A DNA stretch of 63,408 nucleotides, filler included, from Octopus bimaculoides (GCF_001194135.2; 6 parts of 5 records of this genome joined end to end with filler, not necessarily neighbours in it), one strand, 5' to 3'; shown: positions 17,869 through 33,589, counted from the first letter of the whole stretch. Numbers and translations: made by a program. The notes: generated by a model from the letters alone, not told the origin.

Positions 17869-17906
<38 letters not shown>

Positions 17907-18233
17907 TCTGCCCTACATCATTATGCAACCAGTTGTTTTCCCACATGTCCGCACATTCTATTAAAATAAATCGGATGTGCGCAGACGCCAACAAATAGCG
18001 GACAATTTTGGGGTTGGGTAACATTTTCACCGTCACAAATTAATTATTCGGCAAGATGGATAACGGAAGGTAAGTTATTATGTAACTTTAAAAGACGGAT
18101 GAAAATGGCGTAAGGTTTTCTTCCTACACAATAATGAATTTTCTAATTCGACATCTTCTATGATGTACTATGTATTATAAAAACACAGAAAATCTCAGAT
18201 GACAGAATTTTATAAAATTGTTCTATAACTTAC

Positions 18234-19192
18234 CGATTTATTTAAACGAATTCCAATCCAGATCGTTGCGATCGAAAACATCACGTTCAAAGAAACCACA
18301 AACATAACGGTAGCGTGTACAGAGAATATATTTTTTAATGAATCATTAATAATTATGTAAGTTGCAACACAACATCCAGTAATAGAACTGAGTACGATAC
18401 ATCCTGAAACCAACTGAAATGATTCATTGTTTTACTCAGAGTTTTACTCAGTGTTTTACTCAGAGTATGATGAGTGTTACATATTTCTGGGATCTCTTTA
18501 TATTTCTTAAAGAAATACGAAGTATTAGATTGCTTTTCTTCTACGTATCTCTGAGCCTCCCTCGCTACTTTATTAAACTCGTACAGCAGTATAGTCCCAA
18601 TTGCAATATCCATATACCAATCAAACATGACAGACACAACTGATACAATTTTAAATACAATGTGCATCATTGAAATAATTACGTCAAGAAGTTTGTTAGT
18701 TTTGCTATGAATGACTGAGGAACTCCAAATATACTTATTGAAAAGCGGGAGAACGTGGTACATAGTAGGGATCACAATAACAGGTGAGAGTATAAATACA
18801 AGAGATGTAAAAGAAAATATTGCGTTATTATTATAAAACTTTCTATCGTCTTCTTCAACTGTATGTTTGGTGAATGCTTCGATTATTTGTTTGTCCTTAG
18901 GCTTTCTGAAGACTTTCGATGCACAGTAGAATGAAAGCAAACACTGGATAAATACTGAATAAATATATGCGGATATCACATCTGTTGCACTCTGATCTAT
19001 TTGTATCACACGAAAGAAATATATAACGGGGATTGCAATGAGATATACAGAATACATGATATAAAAGGCAGAGATACAGATAGTTTTACATTTGAGGGGC
19101 TTCAGTGATATATTCATAAATGATAGCTTAGAAATATTAACTTTCCCATAAAATTGTAATATTTTATAGAATCGTGTTTCTTTTAGTTCCAT
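18234..19192 (-). pseudogene. Gustatory-receptor-like exon GRL-1 (TM1-TM6), frameshifted
   Basis: Paralogous to GRL-2 and GRL-3. Starts MELKETRFYKILQFYG; a 12-bp triplication at 18428-18466 shifts the frame; the alternate frame continues to IGIRLNKS|GTAAGT. Length 959 nt is not a multiple of 3. Confidence 0.8.
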
Positions 19193-19560
19193 ACTTTTTG
19201 TAATTATGTATTCCTCAAAAGTTACTTATATATAAAGAACTAAACTCGTTGACATAAAACACGGAAGCTCTATTTCTTTGTAAGATCTCTACTTCATCAA
19301 TTTTGCCTCTATAATGAGTTGCGAGTGTTGCACCGCTTCGTCTGTCACGAAACAACTGGTAATAAAGAGGAGACGTGATAAAGTTTTTATATTCAGCCTT
19401 CCGCTTTGTTTGTATGTTGGTATTATTTTTAATTTATTGCTATGGCTGTAATATATAAATCAAATTGAATATTGCACGCTAATCTTCTTAAAAACGTATG
19501 AACCTTAGATGCAATACATTAAACTAATATTTTTGAAAGCATGTAAGAAGATTAATATCA
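19193..19560 (-). promoter_or_regulatory. Conserved 5' region of GRL-1 with acceptor-like site (CAG|19355)
   Basis: TTTATCACGTCTCCTCTTTATTACCAG; aligns with the upstream regions of GRL-2 and GRL-3. Confidence 0.55.
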
Positions 19561-19597
19561 ATATCAATATATATATATATATATATAGTATATAGTA

Positions 19598-19665
<68 letters not shown>

Positions 19666-19815
19666 CATCTATCTATATATTTGAGTTTGAGTAATTTTAT
19701 GTCTGTAAATGTAGGCTGATTGTGTGCATGTACATGTACACACACACACACACACACATATATATACATATATATATGTATATATGTATACATATATATG
19801 TGTGTGCATGTGTGC

Positions 19816-19859
<44 letters not shown>

Positions 19860-19860
19860 C

Positions 19861-21340
19861 TTTCTAGTTTCATGTCAGAGCTCTGGCCATGCTGGAGGAC
19901 AGCAGTTTTGCTACGCAGTTATTACTGGAGAGCCTAATTTAATATGTGGCATTTGGTGAATAAGACAGATTGATACCGCTACCCTCATTTGCACCTCTTG
20001 CCACGAGATAGGTTTATCTGGGACTCTCGAGAGGAAGAGGTCCAGTTTAGATTTGAAAACACCTACATTCACTTTGTGTAGGTCCCTCAAGCTCTTTGGC
20101 AGAATATTAAAAAGCTGTGGGTCCCTGAAACCCAGTTTTATTATCTGGTCCTGAAGCTCGATGGCTTTGCTGGGATCTTTGGTACTATGCAGTGTCGACC
20201 CGTTCTGGCATTTGTGTAGCTTTCAATGCCAACATTTGGCACAATTCCTTCCATGATCTTCCAGATGTAAATTACTGTATACCTCTCCCGCCTTCGCTCC
20301 AGAGAGTAGAGTTTTAGCTGTCTCAGCCTTTCTCAGTAGCTGAGCTGTTGCAATGAGACGATCTTCGTGACGATTCGCTGGATTGCTTCAAGGTTCGCTG
20401 TCAGTTTTACACTGTTGGGTGACCATAGCTGGGAGCAGTAATCGAGGCGGGTGAGGACGAATGTCCTTCAGAGGACCATCATTGTTTCCTTCTCTCTGGT
20501 TCTGAACGTTCTCAGGATCCATCCAGCCAGTTGTCTGCACGCTATCGCCATCCTGGCAATGTGGATTTGGAAAGAAGTATCATCACTCATGTCGATACCC
20601 AGGTCCCTCACTGATTTAGGCTCTGGGATTGAAATCCCCTGTGGACCAGTGTACCTTGTAAGTTTTGTACTCAGTTTTGGGCGCTGGTAGCGCACGGCTT
20701 GGAATTTTTCAGCATTAAACTGCATATTATTATCCTCAGCATATCTATAAATTGAGTCCAACTCCTGCTGCATGTGTGCAACATCGCTGGGGTTCTGTAT
20801 TTTCTGTGAGACTTGCGTATCATCTGCGTAGCTGGCAAGGGTGGCTATCCGGCAGCTGAGGGCATATCAAAAGCTTTTGCAAAGTCAATATATATTACGT
20901 CCACATTTGAGTTGTTGAGTTACTGTCTCAACACCCAGTGCTGTAGGAGCTGGGTCAAGCAGCTCCTACCTGGTCCAAAGCCATGCTGGGTATCACTCAG
21001 CGTGTCGTTTGCTTCACGAAACGCGATTAGTTTCCCTCTGATTATCCGTTCCATGATATTGCTGATGTGTGAAGTCAGAGAGATAGGCCTACGTTTTTTG
21101 GCATCTGCTCTGCTTCCTTATTTGTGGATTGAGCAAATTATTCCCGCCTTCAGTTTGCTTGGCAAACTACTATTTGCAAGAAAGCTGTAGAAGAGAATCT
21201 GCAGTGATTTCGCCAGGGTGCGAATACACGAGGAGGATTCCTAGGACACTATCAGGACCAGCAGTTGAGTGTGCGTCCAGCTCACCTATTGGTAAGTATT
21301 TCTTCTTCGCTAATGTCGATGTATTCCATCGTAACTGAGT
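19861..21340 (-). mobile_element. CR1/L2-group LINE, RT fragments and 3' end
   Basis: YADDT-type motif, QQELDSIYRYAEDNNMQFNAEKFQ and RDLGIDMS; same family as 7568-9240. Confidence 0.85.
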
Positions 21341-21418
21341 CGCTGTTCATATATTATTAGGGATAAAAATCCAAATTTACAGGAGTATCTTTTCCCTAAA
21401 ACTATGTATATATATATA

Positions 21419-21452
<34 letters not shown>

Positions 21453-21749
21453 NNNNNNNNNNNNNNNNNNNNNNNNNNNNNNNNNNNNNNNNNNNNNNNN
21501 NNNNNNNNNNNNNNNNNNNNNNNNNNNNNNNNNNNNNNNNNNNNNNNNNNNNNNNNNNNNNNNNNNNNNNNNNNNNNNNNNNNNNNNNNNNNNNNNNNNN
21601 NNNNNNNNNNNNNNNNNNNNNNNNNNNNNNNNNNNNNNNNNNNNNNNNNNNNNNNNNNNNNNNNNNNNNNNNNNNNNNNNNNNNTATATATATATACACA
21701 CATACATACATACTTATATTTATATATATATATATTTACATTTATATAT

Positions 21750-23080
21750 ATAAATTGATCAGGGCCCCACCAAAGCCATCTTTAGTCCCGGCCCTTTCTA
21801 CGATGTATCGCATAAGGTGGAGGTTGTTGTGGATAGACCTGCTCGGGATTGCTCAAGTTTGTGCTTCCCCGATCAGATTACCAACTACAAACGCCAGCCT
21901 TTTCACTAACACCTTGGGTAAAATCTTAAACTCTGTATTTTGCAAGGGTATGGGCCGAAAATTTCCAAGCACGTCCCCATTATCAGTGTCCTTTCTCAGC
22001 AGTGTTACTACACTCCGGCTAACAGCACTAGGAATTCTCCCATTCTGCTACCAGTTACTGTAGACATCTGCGAAGAAGCTGCCAAACAAATCTGGCATGA
22101 AAATATGGAATTCGTTGGGCAACCATCCAAACCAGGTGATTTGGGACTTATGAAATCGCTTATTACCTCCCGTGTTTCAGAGGCTGTAATCAGCCTTTCG
22201 CAGAATCTCACGTCCGTCATCGAGAAACATGGTAGGCTGTCTAGGCACGAAGTAAAGTTCGCTACCGTCGTCGACCCATCACCCTCCCCAAATTGCCGTG
22301 CAAAGTGCTGCCGGAAAGTCGCACAAACCTGCTCAGAACCGAGTAGCACACGTCCGTCCCGATCCATCAAAGACTTGATTGTGGGTTTATTTCCACGTCG
22401 CGTCTCTACTCTTCGGGCCCATCGGACGGCTTTAGTTCCTTCGTGTTTTAGCGCACCGGCCTTAGCTTTGACATTCGTGTTTCGCCTAAAGAAATGGACA
22501 AGGGCCATTCTCGCCACTAACACGTCGGCCGCGATGCCTTTACTTAATAGCTTCTAATTTGCCAACTAGTTCTCTCTCTGATCTATTTCTTTCTATTGCT
22601 AAATCTTTGCTAAACACCATCGATTCCACTCTAATCGCTCCTTTCAGAGCGATCCACCGCCGGCTGTTGACGATAGCCCCAGTCAGCTACCGCTTAACTA
22701 GTTCACTAATCGGGTCCCTGTAGTCTTTTCCGGGTCCTATTTAAATCGAGGGGCCCTATTTAAATCGACTGAGAATATCACAAGTTTGTGATCTGTGCAG
22801 CCGACCAATTTAAATATATCCTCTTACCTATCACATACTCTTTCTAAATACGATCTGGATGACCCGCTGTGGTTGCTCCATGTCCACACTGGCACATCAG
22901 GGAAAATCTAGTCGGTACCTGTCAGAAAACTGGAAAGTCCTGAGCAGATTTTCGAGACTTTTACACTCCCTTTTACAATGTACTAAACCCACACAATCCT
23001 TTCGTGCGTCCTTCCAAAATACTATTCCAGTCCCTCACTAATACTAAAGTGCGAAACGTTCCCAAGAATGTTTCTAGACA
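21750..23080 (-). mobile_element. Tx1/L1-clade LINE remnant (linker and RT N-terminus)
   Basis: KSPGLDG, LQNTEFKILPKVLVKRL, QTCAIPSRSIHNNLHLMR and GGALINL. Confidence 0.8.
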
Positions 23081-23084
23081 CCTA

Positions 23085-24790
23085 AAGAACTCTGGCCTTC
23101 TAGCCCCTGTTGGGGCATAAACTGCCATTCACTTCCAGGACCACCGCAGAAATCATGTCTCTGGCATTCTGCTTTGAAGCCAGTATTATTCTTATTCGCA
23201 GCAGATACTCTCTGTTTTGTCTTTTCCTTCATGTCGTTGTTTAATTTCATCTGCCTCAAGTATTCTCAGGTATCTATAGCTGGAATGAGGTTGAATTATC
23301 TTAATCATTTCACCACTTGGAAAGCTTATGTCTTCTGTCCTGACAAGCTTTCGTCGTCTCACCACCATCGTAACACATTTTGAGAGCCCAAACTCCAACT
23401 TGATATCATTGGAGAAAATCCGCACAGACTGGACTTGGCTGTCTAGTTCTGCATGGCTTCTTGTGACTAGCTTCAAGTCGTCCATGAGCAGCAAGTGGTT
23501 CAGTTTTCCCTTACCTCTTCCTGGGTCATACTCCAACTTTGGTTTCTGAAGTATTTCACTCAACAGGATAATTCCCAGCACAAAGATCAGTGGGGACCCA
23601 CTGTTTCCTTTGGAAGATTCTTCTCTTGATTGTCGCCTCTCAATGATTCCCTACTGTCAATACTTGATTCCCTGCTGTCGATTCTCTTCTGCAATTCCAT
23701 ATTGTTTCATATAAGGCTTCTCATGTTTTCTGCTACTCCATACATTTCCATTGTTATAATCCAGGAATGCTGACTGAAAAATCCCAAAGGATAATGTCAT
23801 TTTAATCTTCAACGACTGGTTCGGGGGTGATATTCATACCAGTAAGCAGGAGTGCCGATTTTGTAATGCTTACATATTTTCCAGTGTAAATACTGTCCTA
23901 TCCAATTGTGGCGACTTTTCTATTCGTTCGGTGTCAGCATAAGTCATCCCAACACGAGATGATCTATTGTTTCGTCCAATGTGTCACAGATTCTACATTT
24001 AGGGTCAGAACCGTTTTGAAGAACGTTATCCTGGTAGTTTTTGTAAGCAAGCTATTATCTTGTGCAGCCAATATGAAACCTTCAGTCTCTGCTTTCCGTC
24101 CTGAACTTCTCAACAACTGATACGTTGTTGCTTGGTCTACATCAGCATTGTGGCTTCGAAGTATATACTTTCTATCCAGACATTTCTGGCTCCAACGCTC
24201 CTCAATTTGTTTCTGCTTGTTCTTTTTATTTGCAGTATGTTTGATCCGTTTTGCTTCTTTGGTGGCGGTGGTTTCAGGTTCTTCAACTATTTCAGGGATA
24301 ATACCAAGTTCTCTTGCGAATTTGCAAGATTCCTTGACAATAAAATATGAATTTTCGCTGCTTTTGTGTTTGCGTACAAATCGCAGCGTCCAGTCCTCTG
24401 TATTAGATAAGTACCTGCTCATTGCTATTGTGGAGGTGTTATAGCACAGTCCTACCTGCATCATTCCTCTTCTCCCATTACTACTAGGTAGGTGCAGACG
24501 ATCAGCGTCTGCATTTGGGCGGTGCTTGTTATTAGATGTTAGTAGTTGTCTTGTCTTACTGTCCAGGCGTTGGAGTTCTCTAAGATTCTAGTTAATGATG
24601 TAAAAACCGTATTGGAATACTGGAAGTTCTAGTGTGTTAATGGCTTCGATACGATTTTTCGAGCTGAGCTCAGTTTTTAGTATGAGTCATATTTTTCTGT
24701 AATACTATTTTCGTATTTCTTTCTTCATAGTAGCATGTTGTATGCCATCTCCTTCGTTTACGACGGACTTGTGTCGGCGAAAAACGGAAA
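23085..24790 (-). mobile_element. R4/Dong-like LINE remnant
   Basis: LNHLLLMDDLKL, DIKLEFGLSKC, YRYLRILE, LHLPTSSNGRRG-like segment and ETEGFILAAQD. Confidence 0.8.
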
Positions 24791-25355
24791 AGTAGTTTTT
24801 AAAAAGGCCGTCCTATACTGAAAGTGAAAAGACAGGGCAAGGAATATCGACTTGATCCACGAGCTACAATAACAACACCACCGACACACTCACCCAAATC
24901 CCAACAACAAAAGCAATTCTTACTCATTCAACCACAACCACGATTATACGAAGCACCAAAACAGAAACAAATACACGAACAGAAACAACAATCAAAAGAA
25001 ATACTCGTACAACTTACCAGAGAACCCGAACGCCTCATCAACTTCAAGTCATTCGCAAGAGCAACAGCGATCTGATGCAAGAAGTAGGGAAGAACACAAA
25101 TATCCATACAAGAGGAGTAGGATTCCACGATCTTCTGTCGAAAACATGACAGAAGCTGATAAAAACTGATAGAAGCACATACCTAGAAAATTAAAAAAAA
25201 AATACCCAAAAGACATTCAGCCGTTTAGGCTAAAGCCGGACAAAAGGATATTAGGAAGGCCATTACATTAATGATTCAGACGAAGTAGCTGAATCGACCG
25301 GCCTTCTTACAATCCAAGATAAGTAACCTTCTTCCATTTTGTTTCTCCGATAAAC

Positions 25356-26070
25356 ATGGTCGTCTTCAGAGTGGTGTGTGTGAATGTCCGTAGTCTGGGG
25401 TCAGCTTGGAAGCTAGGTCACTTGTTAAACAACCTTAGGTCGCTCGATTTGTATGTGGCTGCAATTCGTGAGACAAGGATTTTTAATGCACAAGCACTAG
25501 CGTCCATTTTCGATGACTATGAGATATATTCATCGTGTGGTCTGTCTACGGGAGGCTCTGATAAGCTGACTATGGGGGTGCTCTGATAAATTTGGATCTA
25601 TCAAAAGCATTCGATACGGTTAACCATCGCTACTTGGAAGTCGTCCTAAGAGCCGGCGGTTTCGGGCCCGTTTTCAGACGCTGGATCACTGCAAACACAG
25701 TGGCGTCTGTTGAGTGGTCAAAGTAAACAGCCACCTATCGGAACCGTTTGGCATCGCACGCTCGGTAGTAGTAACACTGCTACCCTGTCTGGTGGCAGGG
25801 TAGCAGTGTTACTCCGAAAATTCTTAGATATCGAAGTAAAGGCAATCTTCTTGGACCCAGGTAGCAGGTTGGTGGTCGTCAATGTGTATGGTAGCGAAGT
25901 TGGTGCGCTTAGACTGATGATCGTCTATGTGCCAAGAGGAGCTGGAAGGCCAGGATTCTTCAGGTGTCCAGAAACATTCCTGGAAACGTTTTGCAGTTTA
26001 GTACTTGTAGTGGACTAGAATAGTATCTTGGATGCACGGATGTCTAGGTCTAGGACATAGAAGGAGAGGG
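25356..26070 (+). mobile_element. Rearranged Tx1/L1-clade LINE fragments (endonuclease N-terminus plus an RT piece)
   Basis: VVCVNVRSL...AAIRETR, GGRVAVLLRK, GALINLDLSKAFDTVNHRYL. Confidence 0.75.
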
Positions 26071-26125
26071 TGCTACGGATTTAAAATATATATCAAATGG
26101 ATTACTTCTCGCTAATATTCTTAAA
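26071..26125 (-). other. Orphan copy of the GRL upstream flank (vestige of a fourth unit)
   Basis: tgctacggatttaaaatatatatcaaat is identical over 28 nt to 28805-28832, and similarity continues to ...cttaaag. Confidence 0.75.
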
Positions 26126-26485
26126 GTGGAGGCGCAATGGCCCAGTGGTTAGGGCAGCGGACTCGCGGTCATAGGATCGCAGTTTCGTTTCCCAGACCGG
26201 GCGTTGTGTGTGTTTATTGAGCGAAAACACCTAAAGCTCCACGAGGCTCCGGCAGGGGATGGTGGCGAACCCTGCTGAACTCTTTCACCACAACTTTCTC
26301 TCACTCTTACTTCCTGTTTCTGTTGTGCCTGTAATTCAAAGGGTCAGCCTTGTCACACTGTGTCACGCTGAATATCCCCGAGGACTACGTTAAGGGTACA
26401 CGTGTCTGTGGAGTGCTCAGCCACTTGCACGCTAATTTCACGAGCAGGCTGTTCCGTTGATCGGATCAACTGGAACCATCGACGT
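26126..26485 (+). mobile_element. SINE family C, 3'-truncated
   Basis: Near-identical to 37102-37490 and 43559-43944. Confidence 0.9.
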
Positions 26486-26739
26486 TTGTAACCGTGAATT
26501 TTATAGTTTATATTTGTTTTTATGTCTCTTCTTTTCTTATTAATATTCATCATTGGTATTTTTTTATTCTTTTAGTTGTTTCAAGCATTTGACTGCGGCC
26601 AAATATTAAAGATACCCTATTCAAATACAGATTAGGTTAACATTTTCGAAGCCTAGCAGAATCTGGTATTGATATTTCGTTCGTAAATGACCTGTTTGAA
26701 CAACAGTATTCCTATCATTTTATGAGATTTCCTAGATGC

Positions 26740-26791
<52 letters not shown>

Positions 26792-26880
26792 AGCATTTCG
26801 CCCGGTGTGCTAACGATTCTGCCAGCTCGTCGCCTTATACTCATAAATATATATATTTGAGTGTGTATGTGTGTGTGTGC

Positions 26881-26931
<51 letters not shown>

Positions 26932-27639
26932 TGTGTGTATGACCGTGTGTAGCTGTGTGGTAATGTATAAACACTCTAAAAAAAAACATACATTTGTATG
27001 CATAAACATTCAGAAGGAGTTAAAGAAAGAGGAAAATCACAAAAGGAGGAGACGAAGGAGGAGGAGGAAGAGGAGAAGCAGAAGAAAGAATGAAAGACTA
27101 TTAGGAAATACAGAAACATCAGAAAAGCATTCGTAAATTGTTACTGAAATTATCACAATGTCGGTCTGTTGTGTCCCGAAAATAAAGCCTTTGTTGAGAC
27201 TGGACAATGCTGCGTCTATTGCCAATTGTTTTCTAACTCCTCACTCAAGCCTTCTCCATTCATTGGATAAGCGAGATTTTGTGTGGCGTCCCTAAGACGC
27301 TTTACGATGAATAGTAGCAAAGTCCGACGACCAAGAGAGAGAAAGTATGAATGAATGAAGGAATAAGAAAATGAGTAGAATGTCGGTAGTGATAATAGTC
27401 ATAGTGGTAAAGACGGAAGATTTTGGTTCATTATTTCACCTTTATCCAATGTTTAAATTTGGGAAACGAAAGTGGCAAGACGGACATCGGAAGGAAAGAT
27501 ACCAAACAACTTTAAAAACTGCAGATATTGGCGTCACAGAGTCTTTCAATACGTTAAGGAATATGCTAATTCGATATCTTTTATGATGGAATACTAGATA
27601 TAGAGAAAAACTTATTTGACAGAATTATATAAAACTTAC

Positions 27640-28560
27640 CGATTTATTTAAACGAACTCCAATCCCCACCATTGTAATCAAAGCCGCCATGATGCTAGAA
27701 GCTGCAAACATAACGGGAATGTATATAGAGGATATATTCTTAGATGAAACATTTATAATTCCGTAAGTTGCAGTACAACATATAGGAATACTACTGAGTA
27801 CGAAATATCCCGAAGTCAACTGAAATGATTCATTTACTAAATTCAGTATTCTACTCAGGGTATCGTGTAAGTTACATATTTCTGTGATCTCTTTATATTT
27901 CTTAAAGAAATACGAAGTATTAGATTGCTTTTCTTTTACGTACTTCTCAGCCTCGCTCGCTACTTTATTAAACTCATGCTGCAGTGCAATCCCAATTGCT
28001 ATATTGATATACCAATCAAATAGCGCGGATATTATTGATATGCTATTGAATAAATTGTCTATCATTAAAATTGGTAAAAAATTTGTTGAGAAAATGCCAA
28101 TATCGTTCATGCAAAACGGCAATACATTCATAGTAAGTTGAATAATTACAGGTAGCAATACAACTAGAAAAAGTGTCAGAAAAGAAAACGTGTTGTTGTT
28201 ATAGAATACTTGATCGTCTTCTTTAATTGTAAGTTTGGTGAAAGCTTGGACAATTTCTTTGACTTTAGATTTTTTGAAGGTTTTCATTAGAAAAAGCAGC
28301 GAAAGTAAAATATGGAGAAATATCCCGAGAATAAATGCAAACTTCATTTTATTTCCGTGAGGAAGCATTTGTTCAGTAGCATCAGCATATTTAATGAGGT
28401 CTGCAAACAGATATACAGAATACAAGATATAAACCGCATAGAAACACATAGTGTTACATTTGACAGACTTCAGGGATATGTCAGTAAATAACATCCTAAA
28501 AATGTTATTTTTCTCATAGAATTGCAGTATTCTATAGAATCGTGTATCTTTTAGTTCCAT
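27640..28560 (-). CDS. Gustatory-receptor-like exon GRL-2 (TM1-TM6, 307 codons, open)
   Basis: ATG at 28560 (MELKDTRF) matches the paralogs; the track's start at 28629 is a GTG. Six hydrophobic segments; ALQHEFNKV and HDTLSRILNLVNESF motifs; ends VGIGVRLNKS|GTAAGT, phase 0. Confidence 0.85.
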
Positions 28561-28940
28561 AATTTTAGTAAGTAAATATTCGTCAAAGGTTACTGCTATA
28601 TAAAGAGCTAACCCGTTGACATAAGACACACGAGATCTATTTGTATCTACGATGGTTACTTCTTCAATTTTCCCTCTACAATGTCTTGAGAGCGTCGCAC
28701 TCCTTCGTTAGTCACGAAAGAACTGGAAATAAAGAGAAGACGCGATAAAGCTGTTATATAATGTCTTCTACTGTGTTTATATGTAGGGATTATTTCAAAT
28801 CTGTTGCTACGGATTTAAAATATATATCAAATTGAATGCTGCTCTCTAATCCGCTTAAAGCCTATGAATCTTAGATGATTTATATTAAACCATCACTTTA
28901 TAAAAAGTAGAAGAGAATGGATATCAACATCAATATATAT
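28561..28940 (-). promoter_or_regulatory. Conserved 5' region of GRL-2 with acceptor-like site (CAG|28722)
   Basis: CTTTATCGCGTCTTCTCTTTATTTCCAG, 162 nt upstream of the ATG. Confidence 0.55.
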
Positions 28941-29242
28941 AAATAAAATAAAGAGGGTAGAAATTGATATTAATCGATTCACATCAATTTAAACCAGTGC
29001 CTTGGTATATTTAAAGCGACAGACTACGCTGTGAGTTGCAGATATTTACATTCGTAAATATTAACAATGAAACCATGGTTCGTAGGTAACCGTTTTATTT
29101 TGTATATTTTCATTTGTCTTGCTCATTTTTACATTCTGGCATTTTGCTGAAATTTTCTTGAGAACACACTCTTTGCGGTAAGGCGATTTGACGTCTATTC
29201 TTAGCATATTAAGAATCCACTTCGGTGGTTATTCATCTTGTA

Positions 29243-29292
<50 letters not shown>

Positions 29293-29401
29293 ATTAAAAC
29301 AGTAGGGTAAAAAATTGGATATTAATTAATATCAATTTAATACCAGGGAACAAGCAGATTGAAAGAATCAAGGAGATTCAGAAAAATATCTGAGATCTCA
29401 A

Positions 29402-29581
29402 AGGATCATTGTATATGTATATATAAAGGAGACCACTAGGTGGACTGTTAATGTGCTAGAAGAAGCTCACATGTAATGTGTCTACTAATGTGTCTTAGTA
29501 GACACATTACATGTGATCTTCTTCTAGCACATTAACAGTCCACCTAGTGGTCTCCTTTATATATACATATACAATGATCCT
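29402..29581. repeat. Near-perfect ~180-bp palindrome abutting a gap
   Basis: ~87-bp arms with one mismatch around a TGTGTC loop. Confidence 0.9.
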
Positions 29582-29761
29582 NNNNNNNNNNNNNNNNNNN
29601 NNNNNNNNNNNNNNNNNNNNNNNNNNNNNNNNNNNNNNNNNNNNNNNNNNNNNNNNNNNNNNNNNNNNNNNNNNNNNNNNNNNNNNNNNNNNNNNNNNNN
29701 NNNNNNNNNNNNNNNNNNNNNNNNNNNNNNNNNNNNTATATATATATATATATATATATAT

Positions 29762-31408
29762 CAGTGGTACCTTGACTTACGAATGTCCCAACTAACGAGT
29801 TTTTCGAGATACGAGCCTTCTCTTGGCCGAGTTTTTTTTTGCTTTGAGCTGCGAGCTAAAATTCGAGTTAGGAGCTAGCTTCAGACCCCTCACTGCTAGT
29901 CAGCGTAGCGTACGTCACAAAGAACGCCGTAATATCCGCCCACCATTCCGTGCCTCAGTCGACAGCTAGACATATATGCAGGCTAGCAAGTGCGAAGATC
30001 ATTAGTAGATCGATAGCTAGACAGACATGCTCGTTAGTAAGTGAGATCGTTAGCTAGGCTGGTAGTAAACTGCTTACTTACTGTTTGCAGGCTACAGAAG
30101 CATCAGTGATGTGCTCGCCGTTGTGGTTGTGGTTATTTTGCAGAACTTCGTTTTTCCATCATGGGTTCGAAGAAAATGAGTGTGAAGGACAGTGGGGAGA
30201 AGTAGAAAAACGTGACTAAGTATGCATATAGTTGCCATGGCAAAGCATTACGAGTATATTAGTTCAAAGATCTGCACCATACTGAAGCAGAAGGAATCGA
30301 TAAAGGATATAACGCCAGCCAAGGGCATGAAAATAATATCTAAACAGTGGATATCTATCCGTGAAAATATGGTGAACCTGCTGATAGTGTTGTTAGCCGA
30401 GGAGAAGCTCGCAGGAGATAGAGTGACGGAGGCTATAATCTGCTGGAAGGCAAGAGCTATTTATGCTGACTTGTTGCAGCAGACCCCTGGCACTTCTACA
30501 TACAAGGCACCAGGCGAGCCGTTTAAAGCGAGTCGGAGCTAGTTCGAGAATTCACCTCCTTGTCAGGCATGGTGAGGCAGCAAGAACGAATATGAAATGG
30601 ATTTTGAAACACTCGAACCCGAAGCAGCAGTGGTGGAGGAGATTGCATCCTTCGGCAAGTCCATGGCCCTGGGCGAGTATGAAGATGATATCAATGATCT
30701 CATCGAGGATTACACCGAGACACTAACAACAGAGGAGCTAAAGGAGCGATAGACGCAGCAGCACACGGAGGTTTTGCAGGAAATAGGTGACTCAGAGGAG
30801 ATGGAGGCGGTTATCTCTACAAGTGAAGTAAAGGAAATGTCGAGGGATGTGGGAGAAACTTTCAGACTTTATTCAAAAGAGACACTCATGAAAATTGCAA
30901 CCGGGCGTGCGACGGCGCTATTTAATGACACTTGCCAAACGCATTTCGGAAACATTCTGAAAGGAAGGATGAAGCAGACCTTATTGGACAAGTACTTTAT
31001 CTAAAATTCCTGCAGATGAAAGTGAATAAAGCGTGGTGAGAAGGGCAAAAATCAGATAATAAAATTCAGTAACTCAATTCAGCATTTCTCCTCCACCTCC
31101 GTCAGTATCCTCAAGTCGTCTGATCTCCAAGGTAAATGCTGTACATCATACTTAATAAAACCAGTTTATTACAGTACATTCTGTTCCATTGTTTTTTTAA
31201 AATACAATATTCGTTATTTAGTACATTTTTCTTATTTAAAAACACGCAACAACAAAGAAATGGTATGTTTTTTTTTTGTGTCGGGCGAGCGGAACGGATT
31301 AATGGTATTTAGATTCATTTCAATGAGGAAATTTGATTTGACATACGAATAATTTGAGTTACGAGCTAGTTACGGAACGAATTAAACTCGTAAGTCAAAG
31401 TACCACTG
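29762..31408 (+). mobile_element. Tigger/pogo DNA transposon, internally deleted
   Basis: TIRs CAGTGGTACCTTGACTTACGA / TCGTAAGTCAAAGTACCACTG followed by TA; CENP-B HTH-like SKICTILKQKE...ICWKARAIYADL...FKASRS and C-terminal ATALFND..HF. Confidence 0.9.
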
Positions 31409-31444
<36 letters not shown>

Positions 31445-31448
<4 letters not shown>

Positions 31449-31730
31449 TTATTACTTGTTTGACTGCGGCCATGCTGGAGCACCACCTTTAGTCGAGCAA
31501 ATCGACTCCAGGACTTATTCTTAGTAAGCCTAGTACTTATTCTATCGGTCTCTTTTGCCGAACCCCTAAGTTACGAGCACGTAAACACACCAGCATCGGT
31601 TGTCAAAGCGATGGTGGGAGGGACGAATACAGGCACACAAACGTATACATACATACATACATACATACATACACACGTGTGTGTGTGTGTGTGTGCGTGT
31701 AGATACAACGGGCTTCTTTCAGTTTCAATC
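31445..31730 (-). mobile_element. SINE family A, 5'-truncated
   Basis: Tail ggccatgctggagcacc, internal (TACA/TG)n, and part of the head. Confidence 0.85.
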
Positions 31731-32328
31731 TACATCAAAATATTTAGAAAGATGCACGAGCAAGTGCTAATAATAAAGTGAATATTGTCTCGTAGAAAAC
31801 TATTAATACATGAATAATTGTATCTCAAATTATTACCTTATATGAAGTTCATTTCCGTTTTCGTTCCGTGCTCTTCTAAATACGAAGCCATCGTTGACAC
31901 CGCCCAATAGTGTTCCCATATAAATAGTGTTGCAACCCCTCGCCTAATCCTTAAACGATATTTTCTGCGGCTTCCCAACCACACATCGTAACACGAATTG
32001 TAGCTAGGAAGGAAGAGAGTGACAGACAGATAGATAGACGGACAGAGACAGACAGAGACAGAGAGACTGAGAGACAGAGACATAGAGCAAAAGAGTGGGG
32101 TCAGAAAAACATTTTAGACCATTATTTCAGGTCTGTCTTATTTCTACAACAGGGGAAAAAATGGCCAGATAGACATCAGATAATGGAAAACAGGCGAAAA
32201 TGACGTAATGTGATCTATCTACGTATTAACGAATCTGTTAATTCCACATCTTTTAAGATGTAAGACGCATTATAAAAATACAAATAAAATCAAATAAGAG
32301 AATTTTATAAAATTATTATATAACTTAC

Positions 32329-33270
32329 CGTTTTATTTAAACGAACTCCAATCCAAACCATGGTTGTCAAATACATCAAGCAAATAGATTCCGAAGTTGT
32401 AACATAGATGTATTCATGAGATTTATTTTTCAAGGAATCATTTATGATTCTGTAAGTAGCAATACAACTTCCAGCAATACCACCGAGTACTAGAAACCCC
32501 GAAGACAACTGAAATGATTCATTTACCAATTTCAGTATTCTACTCAGAGTATCATGTGAGTTACATATTTCTGGAATTTCTTTATATTTCTTAAAGAAAC
32601 ACGAAGTGTCTGATTGCTTTTCTTTTACATATATCTGAGCTTCATTCTCTAATTTATTAAACTCATAAATCAGTGCAAACCCAAATGCAAAGTTCATATA
32701 GTAATCAAATAGAACGGAGGCAGATAATATAGAATAAAATATAACGTGTATTGTGAAAATTGGTACATGATACACATTAGTGATTTTTACAGAAATTCTC
32801 AAGGAACTCTGAGAGCTTATAATGAAAAACGAAGGAACGAAAATCATAAGATAAACAATAAGAGGCAATAACACAAATGTATAAAGTGATATACCGGAAA
32901 ATATTAAACTAGAATTATAGAATTTTCTATCATTTTCTTCAATTTTAAGTTTGGTAAATGCTTCGATTATTTCTTTGTCGTTAGATTTTCTGAAGATTTT
33001 TATCAGACAATAAATTGAAAGGAATCCCTGGAGATATATTGTGTAAATATATCTAAATATTTCACCGCTTGTGCTTTGATCCATTTGTATTATATCAATA
33101 ATAGGTCTCGCAAGCAGATATATACAATACACGATATAACAACCATAAAAGCAGATTATGCGAGGCTTCAGTGATTTCAGTGGTGATAGGTTCATAACTG
33201 ATATACCGAAAATATTAATCTTCCGATAGAATTCCAGCATTTTATAGAAGCCTGTGTCCTTCAGGTCCAT
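32329..33270 (-). CDS. Gustatory-receptor-like exon GRL-3 (TM1-TM6, 314 codons, open)
   Basis: Starts MDLKDTGFYKMLEFY; ALIYEFNKL, HDTLSRILKLVNESF and CIATYRII motifs; ends VWIGVRLNKT|GTAAGT, phase 0. Confidence 0.85.
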
Positions 33271-33460
33271 AATTTCCGTAATTCAATATCCTTCGCCGGT
33301 TACTTCTATGTGAACAGCTAAACTATTTGACATAGGCTGCGCAAGGTTAGCTCCCTTGTCAGGTTGCAAGTTCTTCAATTTAACTGTTACACAATGCTGC
33401 ACTGTTTCATGTGTCAGGAAAGAACTAACAATGAACGTGAAACGAGATAAAAGACATATA
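33271..33460 (-). promoter_or_regulatory. Conserved 5' region of GRL-3 with acceptor-like site (TAG|33424)
   Basis: TTTTATCTCGTTTCACGTTCATTGTTAG|TTCTTTCCTGAC aligns with the GRL-1 and GRL-2 acceptors. Confidence 0.5.
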
Positions 33461-33589
33461 TATATATATATATANNNNNNNNNNNNNNNNNNNNNNNNNN
33501 NNNNNNNNNNNNNNNNNNTTAATTAATTAANNNNNNNNNNNNNNNNNNNNNNNNNNNNNNNNNNNNNNNNNNNNTTCTTTTCTTTTTTT

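Follow-up and report, generated by a model that had tools for sequence, protein, structure and literature searches.

The DNA considered here is a window of 63,408 nucleotides (nt), filler included, from Octopus bimaculoides (GCF_001194135.2), in which six parts of five records of the genome are joined end to end, and the analysed piece covers positions 17869-33474 of that window. Within the piece there are three paralogous open exons, all on the minus strand and named C, B and A from high to low coordinates (Table 1), each encoding the first six transmembrane helices (TM1-TM6) of a gustatory receptor-like (GRL) protein of the 7tm_7 or 7TMIC type. The piece is likely to be a segment of an octopod GRL locus in which such units are spliced alternatively onto shared downstream exons encoding TM7, and the three exons would then probably be alternative first exons. 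The original prediction of a tandem cluster of genes is thus retained as regards the tandem paralogous units and probably to be set aside as regards separate genes.

Three exons of a gustatory receptor-like family

All three exons begin at a conserved ATG with the common start MELK[DE]T.FY... and close with R-L-N-K-[TS], immediately before a GTAAGT donor that follows a complete codon, which places the intron in phase 0 in each case. Six helices are encoded in 307-319 amino acids (aa). Pairwise identity is 51-52% in protein and approximately 70% in DNA, and the paralogs also resemble one another in DNA outside the exons, over 100-170 nt of the intron and as much as 385 nt upstream. A stop-free run of more than 300 codons at a GC content of 32%, seen three times and with a conserved donor, is more than chance. 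The prediction of three minus-strand exons with six helices each was borne out, position 18234 being the last base of exon A and 33270 the ATG of exon C, and every copy has the L..EF.KL segment expected after TM4, in the form L..EFNK[LV]. Before TM5, the expected H..L....VN..F is also present, albeit with six residues rather than four between L and VN (H..L......VN..F). Scans of the piece for transfer RNA genes and Rfam families gave no matches.

A word-indexed search returned one relative of these exons, and a profile search run exhaustively over 1.84 billion representative proteins returned 18 matches, all from one narrow family. Those with names are LOC118764605, LOC118764607 and LOC118764608 of Octopus sinensis, each labelled 'uncharacterized protein', and one hypothetical protein from O. 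vulgaris; the others are short contigs that Logan assembled from public sequencing runs, with open reading frames that read through the same donor. A phase-0 intron right after TM6, as originally predicted, is seen in three of three window exons and in nine of nine read-through relatives, the latter all continuing with 'VS...', the translation of GTNAGT. Spliced relatives add a 71-aa tail with TM7, for a total of 389-421 aa, and two spliced O. sinensis products continue after TM6 as VHSIT.SIHYMQFQ....EVVAKILVFLNRLTTESHGIDVGGCFVITPSSTLTMIGSFITYILVVIQTK.L. The TM7 motif reads TYILVVIQT in LOC118764607 and LOC118764608 and TYSIVAYQT in LOC118764605, and so agrees with TYhhhhhQF at T, Y and Q, three of its four positions, with T in the place of F. 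Three introns of phase 0 close to the 3' end are a hallmark of gustatory receptor (GR) genes (PMC9998090; PMC7746228). All three are present in the O. sinensis locus described below (L006), after TM6, after ...EVVAK and before MIGSFITY..., and the first of them, after TM6, is in phase 0 in all three window exons.

Comparison with the Pfam family 7tm_7 (PF08395), for which the gathering score is 26.6 bits, gave a divided result, as the window exons alone had no Pfam match even at E<=10 while relatives carrying TM7 passed the threshold (P0011 with 27.4 bits, P0030 with 30.3 and the full-length P0029 with 33.8 over profile positions 31-365), indicating that the signal needs TM7. The third exon of L006 joined to its tail scored 28.9 bits, and exon B artificially joined to the O. 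sinensis tail scored 34.7 bits in a collinear match over positions 35-367 of the 370 in the profile. The tail alone scored 15.8 bits, and none of four controls with reversed or shuffled exon B plus tail matched the family. The behaviour of hmmscan on these sequences was uneven: truncated P0030 scored 30.3 bits, yet the full exon with the same tail gave no match, and near-identical O. sinensis exon-plus-tail products gave either 28.9 bits or no match. Detection this unstable means that profile screens for GRLs will miss members unpredictably.

An AlphaFold model of exon B, which comprises six of the seven helices, was built from a 22-row alignment and reached a mean predicted local distance difference test score (pLDDT) of 80.7 and a predicted template modelling score of 0.80, with helices at residues 35-65, 71-95, 127-151, 161-212, 222-270 and 277-306; an earlier run with a 5-row alignment had a pLDDT of 41 and was discarded. 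In a Foldseek search of the PDB, with TM-scores normalised to the query, the best matches to this model were insect odorant receptors (ORs), namely 8z9a_C (ApisOR5, 0.66), 8v3c_D (AgamOR28, 0.65) and 7lid_A (MhOR5, 0.62), followed by 8z9z_D (Orco, 0.54), BmGr9 (8vc1 and 8vc2, 0.51-0.53) and several entries of Gr43a (DmGr43a, 0.40-0.46). Among the matches listed, every TM-score of 0.40 or more belongs to an insect odorant or gustatory receptor or to Orco, and every non-7TMIC structure scores 0.28 or less. The OR and GR matches carry Foldseek probabilities of 0.97-1.00, at a protein identity of 7-14% over the Foldseek alignments. The insect OR/GR fold suggested by the original prediction was therefore recovered in the exon B model, with best TM-scores of 0.62-0.66.

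The distribution of charge in exon B is also that of a GRL. Lysine and arginine residues number seven, seven and eight in the N-terminus, loop 2-3 and loop 4-5, against two, none and one in loops 1-2, 3-4 and 5-6, and the corresponding inside segments are 35, 34 and 67 aa long against 15, 13 and 11 aa for the outside loops. The N-terminus is thus predicted to be intracellular, with inside loops longer than outside loops, which is the GRL-like arrangement and the opposite of that of G-protein-coupled receptors (GPCRs); both topology and loop length are criteria for GRLs (PMC7746228). GPCR families in Pfam, including 7tm_1, had no match among the window exons, relatives and joins tested, and the single GPCR structure among the Foldseek matches had a TM-score of 0.16. 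From the 7tm_7 scores that spliced relatives reach, their TM7 motif and phase-0 introns, the modelled exon B fold and the predicted N-in topology, it is concluded that the family belongs to the GR/GRL proteins and that the window exons are its TM1-TM6 parts. The identity proposed at the outset, a GR-like 7TMIC, accordingly stands: a profile match and a structural match were both obtained, the predicted topology is not N-out, and no other family matched better.

Tandem first exons and a shared tail in Octopus sinensis

The O. sinensis locus L006 extends over 91 kb without gaps and contains seven tandem same-strand exons of 954 nt, six of them open and one with a stop, each followed in phase 0 by GTAAGT, GTAAGC or GTGAGT. 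One set of three tail exons (T1-T3, Table 1) lies after all seven. Exon 1 of the seven is joined to the tail over a distance of 65 kb, with six first exons skipped (isoform X4 of LOC118764607; isoform P0030). A 389-aa product (318 + 71 aa) has its start further upstream, outside the locus, and its end at the same coordinate. For LOC118764608, isoforms X2 and X3 agree in the tail and differ in the TM5-TM6 sequence, and the model of LOC118764605 spans 105 kb, with a second product, of 403 aa, ending at the same coordinate. An array of first exons with a shared tail is thereby shown for O. sinensis, the isoforms being database gene models, and its seven exons ahead of a single tail set, with isoforms that differ only in the first exon, indicate that the window exons are probably alternative first exons as well. 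In LOC118764607 X4 there is in addition an internal acceptor, TTTCAG/GAC, within T1, which removes 14 residues (VHSITRSIHYMQFQ) of the TM6-TM7 loop.

The arrays appear long in both relatives. First exons in O. sinensis are spread over at least 71 kb, and sampling of one O. vulgaris chromosome strand gave exons of the family at either end of a stretch of approximately 197 kb. Two O. vulgaris segments, L007 and L008, cover 73 kb of array of the window's own subfamily, in which no fewer than six first exons look intact and several others are partial. The annotated 360-aa hypothetical protein of O. vulgaris, CAI9727304.1 (= P0010; 48 kb, L007 10001-58380), is a chimera in which an unrelated, probably repeat-derived N-terminal part is followed by pieces of two GRL first exons in a non-natural order. 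Gene callers thus mis-model such arrays, and GRL counts in cephalopod annotations are therefore probably too low.

If the window exons behave as those of O. sinensis appear to, transcription would begin at one unit, from that unit's own promoter, and the chosen exon would be spliced over the units downstream of it to three short phase-0 exons, a single set common to all units, which would sit beyond the low-coordinate end of the piece. The outcome would be a family of proteins of approximately 380 aa with variable TM1-TM6 and a common TM7. In solved insect OR and GR structures, TM1-TM6 form the ligand pocket and TM7 lines the pore. By homology, the products would assemble as subunits of tetrameric ligand-gated cation channels and be candidate chemoreceptors, a channel and chemosensory function being suggested by analogy with those receptors.

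Each unit is preceded by an upstream block of about 300 nt that is common to units and species, with a TATA-like CTTTATATA approximately 40 nt before the ATG. Alignment A5, which comprises the upstream blocks of eight units from three sources, contains as common elements TTATGTCAACG.GTTTAGC and the TATA-like CTTTATATA, and the blocks are about as well conserved as the coding exons, both among paralogs and across species. This degree of conservation suggests that each first exon has its own promoter, and the shared upstream elements may serve in promoter choice.

Constraint, decay and alternative explanations

An alternative explanation, considered unlikely, is that the exons are dead relics, i.e. 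duplicated first exons that were cut off from TM7, drift neutrally and yield no functional receptor. Between exon C and its O. vulgaris ortholog (89% nt identity) dN is 0.108 and dS 0.158 (dN/dS 0.69), the O. vulgaris copy having a 1-nt insertion, and between exon B and its ortholog dN is 0.163 and dS 0.199 (dN/dS 0.82), with one in-frame 15-nt indel. Ratios of 0.69 and 0.82 indicate amino-acid change close to the neutral rate, as relics would show, and frameshifts in exon A and in the O. vulgaris ortholog of C, together with the stop in one O. sinensis exon, point in the same direction. The frames themselves argue otherwise. Exon B is open in both species and exon C is open in the window, while in a neutral simulation with 103-138 substitutions only 0.1-0.2% of trials remained free of stops (P = 0.001 and 0.002; B and C). 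Gap openings are approximately seven-fold rarer in the exons (3 per 1859 nt) than in the flanks (31 per 2808 nt), the indels in B total 15 nt and keep the frame, and both the donors and the upstream blocks are conserved. The absence of stops in B and C and the scarcity of gap openings indicate that the frames are maintained while the sequence diversifies, and exons B and C look functional. Upkeep of the frame with fast diversification is common in birth-and-death chemoreceptor families, in which a visible fraction of copies is dead.

Exon A is frameshifted by a 12-nt tandem repeat that nets +11 nt relative to exon B and leads to a stop codon at 18353-18355. Its last 65 codons before the donor are open in the corrected frame, which indicates that the lesion is either recent or an error of assembly, and exon A is therefore likely to be a recent pseudo-exon or an assembly artefact. 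The repeat encodes TLSK repeats, and exons B and C, which are intact, each carry an imperfect pair of copies at the same place, which may be a recurrent slippage site. Further disabled copies are the O. vulgaris ortholog of C (L009 1758-2700), with its 1-nt insertion, the sixth O. sinensis exon (L006 56579-57532), with one in-frame stop, and an O. vulgaris exon at L007 19978-20931, also with one stop; partial and inverted fragments lie at L006 38068-37778 and 49662-49210 and at L007 39535-40048, 46446-47054 and 58074-58810. One O. vulgaris exon, Ov2, had one stop and gave meaningless distances at the coordinates used, and was left out of the conclusions. At the other end of the age range, four young O. 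vulgaris first exons (L007 30072-31022, 44569-45510 and 63234-64172, and L008 19160-20110) differ by 5-12% per codon position and have dN/dS values of 0.5-1.1 in pairwise comparison, and are very recent duplications within the array; differences this small indicate that the array is still expanding.

A second alternative is that the piece holds three independent and complete GRL genes in tandem, with TM7 exons of their own that are hidden in gaps or too diverged to be found, which is judged very unlikely. The piece does have two gaps, at 21453-21684 and 29582-29736, with lengths that are only estimated, and tail exons are short enough (57-90 nt) to escape tblastn. However, no TM7 or tail exon was found in any frame of the piece by tblastx between the regions downstream of the paralogs, tblastn searches with three different tails, a scan for the motif TY.....Q or a tail hidden Markov model (HMM). 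Nor was one found in L009, the O. vulgaris chromosome segment that contains the orthologs of C and B and no runs of N, where the C-B interval is gapless, collinear and shorter than in the window, or in the 73 kb of L007 and L008, with their six or more intact exons. In O. sinensis, moreover, only one tail set follows all seven exons.

Both gaps fall between exons, in (TA)n microsatellite sequence, and are crossed by no exon frame. The three exons are on one contig each, and their tandem order therefore depends on scaffolding; no bridging of the gaps by homology through repeat copies was found. L009 is collinear with the piece at a DNA identity of 84-87%, and its anchors (Table 1) flank each gap on both sides without any change of order or direction, which supports the scaffold in both respects. 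This collinearity and the restriction of the profile matches to one octopus family bear out the cephalopod-type genome of the original prediction, with the piece at a dS of approximately 0.16-0.20 from O. vulgaris. Stretches of (TA)n at 21403-21452, 21685-21752, 29737-29761, 17869-17905 and 33455-33474 border both gaps and both ends of the piece, so that contig breaks of the assembly coincide with TA repeats. The spacer between units B and A, which is not part of a receptor, amounts to approximately 5.6 kb in the window against only 464 nt in the orthologous O. vulgaris interval; it contains an RVT_1 fragment at 23192-23581 on the minus strand, and copies of its repeats occur at 70-86% identity in the O. 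sinensis and O. vulgaris arrays (L006 and L007). No ortholog of exon A was found in the 6.6 kb of O. vulgaris sequence past the last anchor (L009 16155-22771), and exon A may have arisen by a duplication specific to its lineage, its counterpart may have disappeared from O. vulgaris, or it may lie further along.

That the six helices belong to a membrane protein from some other family, such as half of a transporter or a GPCR-type protein with a superficial resemblance to GRs, is extremely improbable: the exons alone have no Pfam match and chains of ATP-binding cassette (ABC) transporters hold several of the best Foldseek E-values, but these ABC matches are long-helix artefacts (TM-score 0.14-0.28 and root-mean-square deviation 15-28 Å, against 0.40-0.66 and probabilities of 0.97-1.00 for ORs and GRs), the spliced relatives pass the 7tm_7 gathering score and have the TM7 motif and three phase-0 introns, the predicted topology is N-in, and neither 7tm_1 nor any other Pfam family was matched.

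Several observations weigh against a GRL locus with a shared tail. The Foldseek E-values, at 0.04-0.4, are weak and nowhere as low as 0.001, and a family profile run against PDB sequences found no solved structure, with only chance matches to ferritin and Cas9 (E>0.1). Detection by Pfam 7tm_7 is marginal and inconsistent: no 7tm_7 match came from C plus tail, from A plus tail or from four genuine O. sinensis combinations of exon and tail, all of which the HMMER filters dropped. Ratios of dN/dS are high, not only for the two ortholog pairs (0.69 and 0.82) but also among paralogs (0.51-0.82). Disabled first exons are frequent in the arrays, exon A among them, and part of the array is decaying. 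The shared TM7 exons of the window's own array were found neither in the piece nor, in O. vulgaris, in the approximately 12 kb that lie downstream of exon B's ortholog. Finally, the O. sinensis isoforms are database gene models, and the splicing of the window exons would follow from them by sequence homology. Alternative first exons with a shared TM7 nevertheless remain the preferred explanation for the piece.

A broader possibility, put forward only tentatively and rather doubtful at present, is that in octopods GRL first exons with alternative promoters and a shared TM7 make up very large arrays, which duplicate and decay fast under near-neutral change while staying open, and that these form a second ionotropic chemoreceptor repertoire. 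Were this the case, large GRL arrays would constitute an undescribed repertoire beside the chemotactile receptors, from which each sensory cell perhaps selects a single first exon, in the manner of the clustered protocadherins.

Table 1. Coordinates of the receptor units, the O. sinensis tail exons and other features of the piece. Window positions count from the first letter of the window; a slash marks an exon-intron junction.
Feature	Window position	Strand	Position in relative	Description and basis
Exon C	33270..32329	-		314 codons, ATG to AAA ACG/GTAAGT; N-terminus and TM1-TM6; intact; open reading frame, family alignment
Exon B	28560..27640	-		307 codons, TM1-TM6, end AAA TCG/GTAAGT; intact; open reading frame, AlphaFold, Foldseek, ortholog
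Exon A	19192..18234	-		TM1-TM6, end AAA TCG/GTAAGT; one frameshift; part 1 19192-18431, part 2 18428-18234
Exon C donor	32323..32328	-		GTAAGT, phase 0; sequence; kept in O. vulgaris ortholog
Exon B donor	27634..27639	-		GTAAGT, phase 0; sequence; kept in O. vulgaris ortholog
Exon A donor	18228..18233	-		GTAAGT, phase 0; sequence
Unit C upstream block	33271..33462	-		TATA-like element approximately 40 nt before ATG; alignment A5; 84% identity to O. vulgaris ortholog
Unit B upstream block	28561..28945	-		Includes CTTTATATAG approximately 40 nt before ATG; paralog DNA similarity to 28945; alignment A5; 88% identity to ortholog
Unit A upstream block	19193..19580	-		Includes CTTTATATATAAG; paralog DNA similarity; alignment A5
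Tail exon T1			L006 75234-75302	One set after seven first exons
Tail exon T2			L006 79184-79273	One set after seven first exons
Tail exon T3			L006 81267-81323	One set after seven first exons
12-nt tandem repeat in exon A	18429..18466	-		3.2 copies; Tandem Repeats Finder, comparison with exon B
Spacer between units B and A	19860..25440			Repeat-rich, reverse-transcriptase fragments; gap 21453-21684 inside
Collinear block	31732-33462		L009 3306-1569
Collinear block	30593-31413		L009 7642-6791
Collinear block	28941-29297		L009 8931-8576
Collinear block	26928-28945		L009 11633-9612
Collinear block	25444-26073		L009 15476-15125
Collinear block	19646-19859		L009 16155-15940

Comparison with known receptor and gene systems

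Work on octopus chemosensation has centred on chemotactile receptors derived from acetylcholine receptors, on ionotropic receptors and on GPCRs. The octopus has in addition a fast-evolving, locally duplicating GRL family, which amounts to an overlooked candidate chemoreceptor repertoire. Octopus members are named only 'uncharacterized protein' in databases, and in the searchable literature, with most subscription journals outside its scope, no description was found of octopus GRLs or of an alternative-first-exon layout in cephalopods. To our knowledge, no function has been assigned to any molluscan GRL.

GRLs are known across the protostomes, including Mollusca (PMC7746228; PMC11526382), and non-arthropod members have been described by Robertson 2015, Eyun et al. 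2017 and Saina et al. 2015 (as cited in PMC7746228). The octopus proteins resemble these in their size of approximately 380-420 aa, their seven helices, predicted intracellular N-terminus, longer intracellular loops, TM7 motif and borderline 7tm_7 similarity. They also keep the ancestral plan of a GR gene, with a long first exon and three short exons behind phase-0 introns.

The closest likeness in layout is to the alternatively spliced GR loci of insects, such as Gr28b, Gr39a and Gr23a of Drosophila and Gr60a-m of Blattella germanica, in which tandem long first exons encode TM1-TM6 and end in phase-0 donors, three short final exons with TM7 are shared, and some first exons are pseudogenic (PMC6175461). 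As in Gr28b and Gr39a, the piece has tandem same-strand first exons with phase-0 donors, here GTAAGT, and no private C-terminal exons were found between the units, and first exons with shared 3' exons are shown in O. sinensis L006. The octopus case differs in its cephalopod host, in arrays that appear much longer and in a TM7 motif that ends in T rather than F; the insect exons are known to be spliced alternatively, whereas for the window's own exons this would be so by comparison with O. sinensis. The GR gene plan and, probably, this mode of splicing would thus extend to cephalopods. If the octopus uses the same arrangement of alternative first exons as insect GRs, the arrangement is either very old or has arisen repeatedly.

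Clustered protocadherin genes and UGT1A have variable first exons with their own promoters and shared constant exons. By analogy only, the octopus units are similar in having tandem variable first exons, a conserved upstream element for each and shared 3' exons. The protein families are unrelated, and promoter choice is here no more than a possible role of the conserved blocks.

The chemotactile receptors of octopus are ionotropic, lineage-expanded and fast-evolving (PMC11526382). Like these receptors, which derive from nicotinic acetylcholine receptors, the octopus GRLs would form a candidate ionotropic chemoreceptor family, but the folds are unrelated, chemotactile receptors being pentameric Cys-loop proteins and 7TMICs tetrameric. 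Demonstrated ligands and sucker expression belong to the chemotactile receptors, whereas the GRLs are known here from their sequence.

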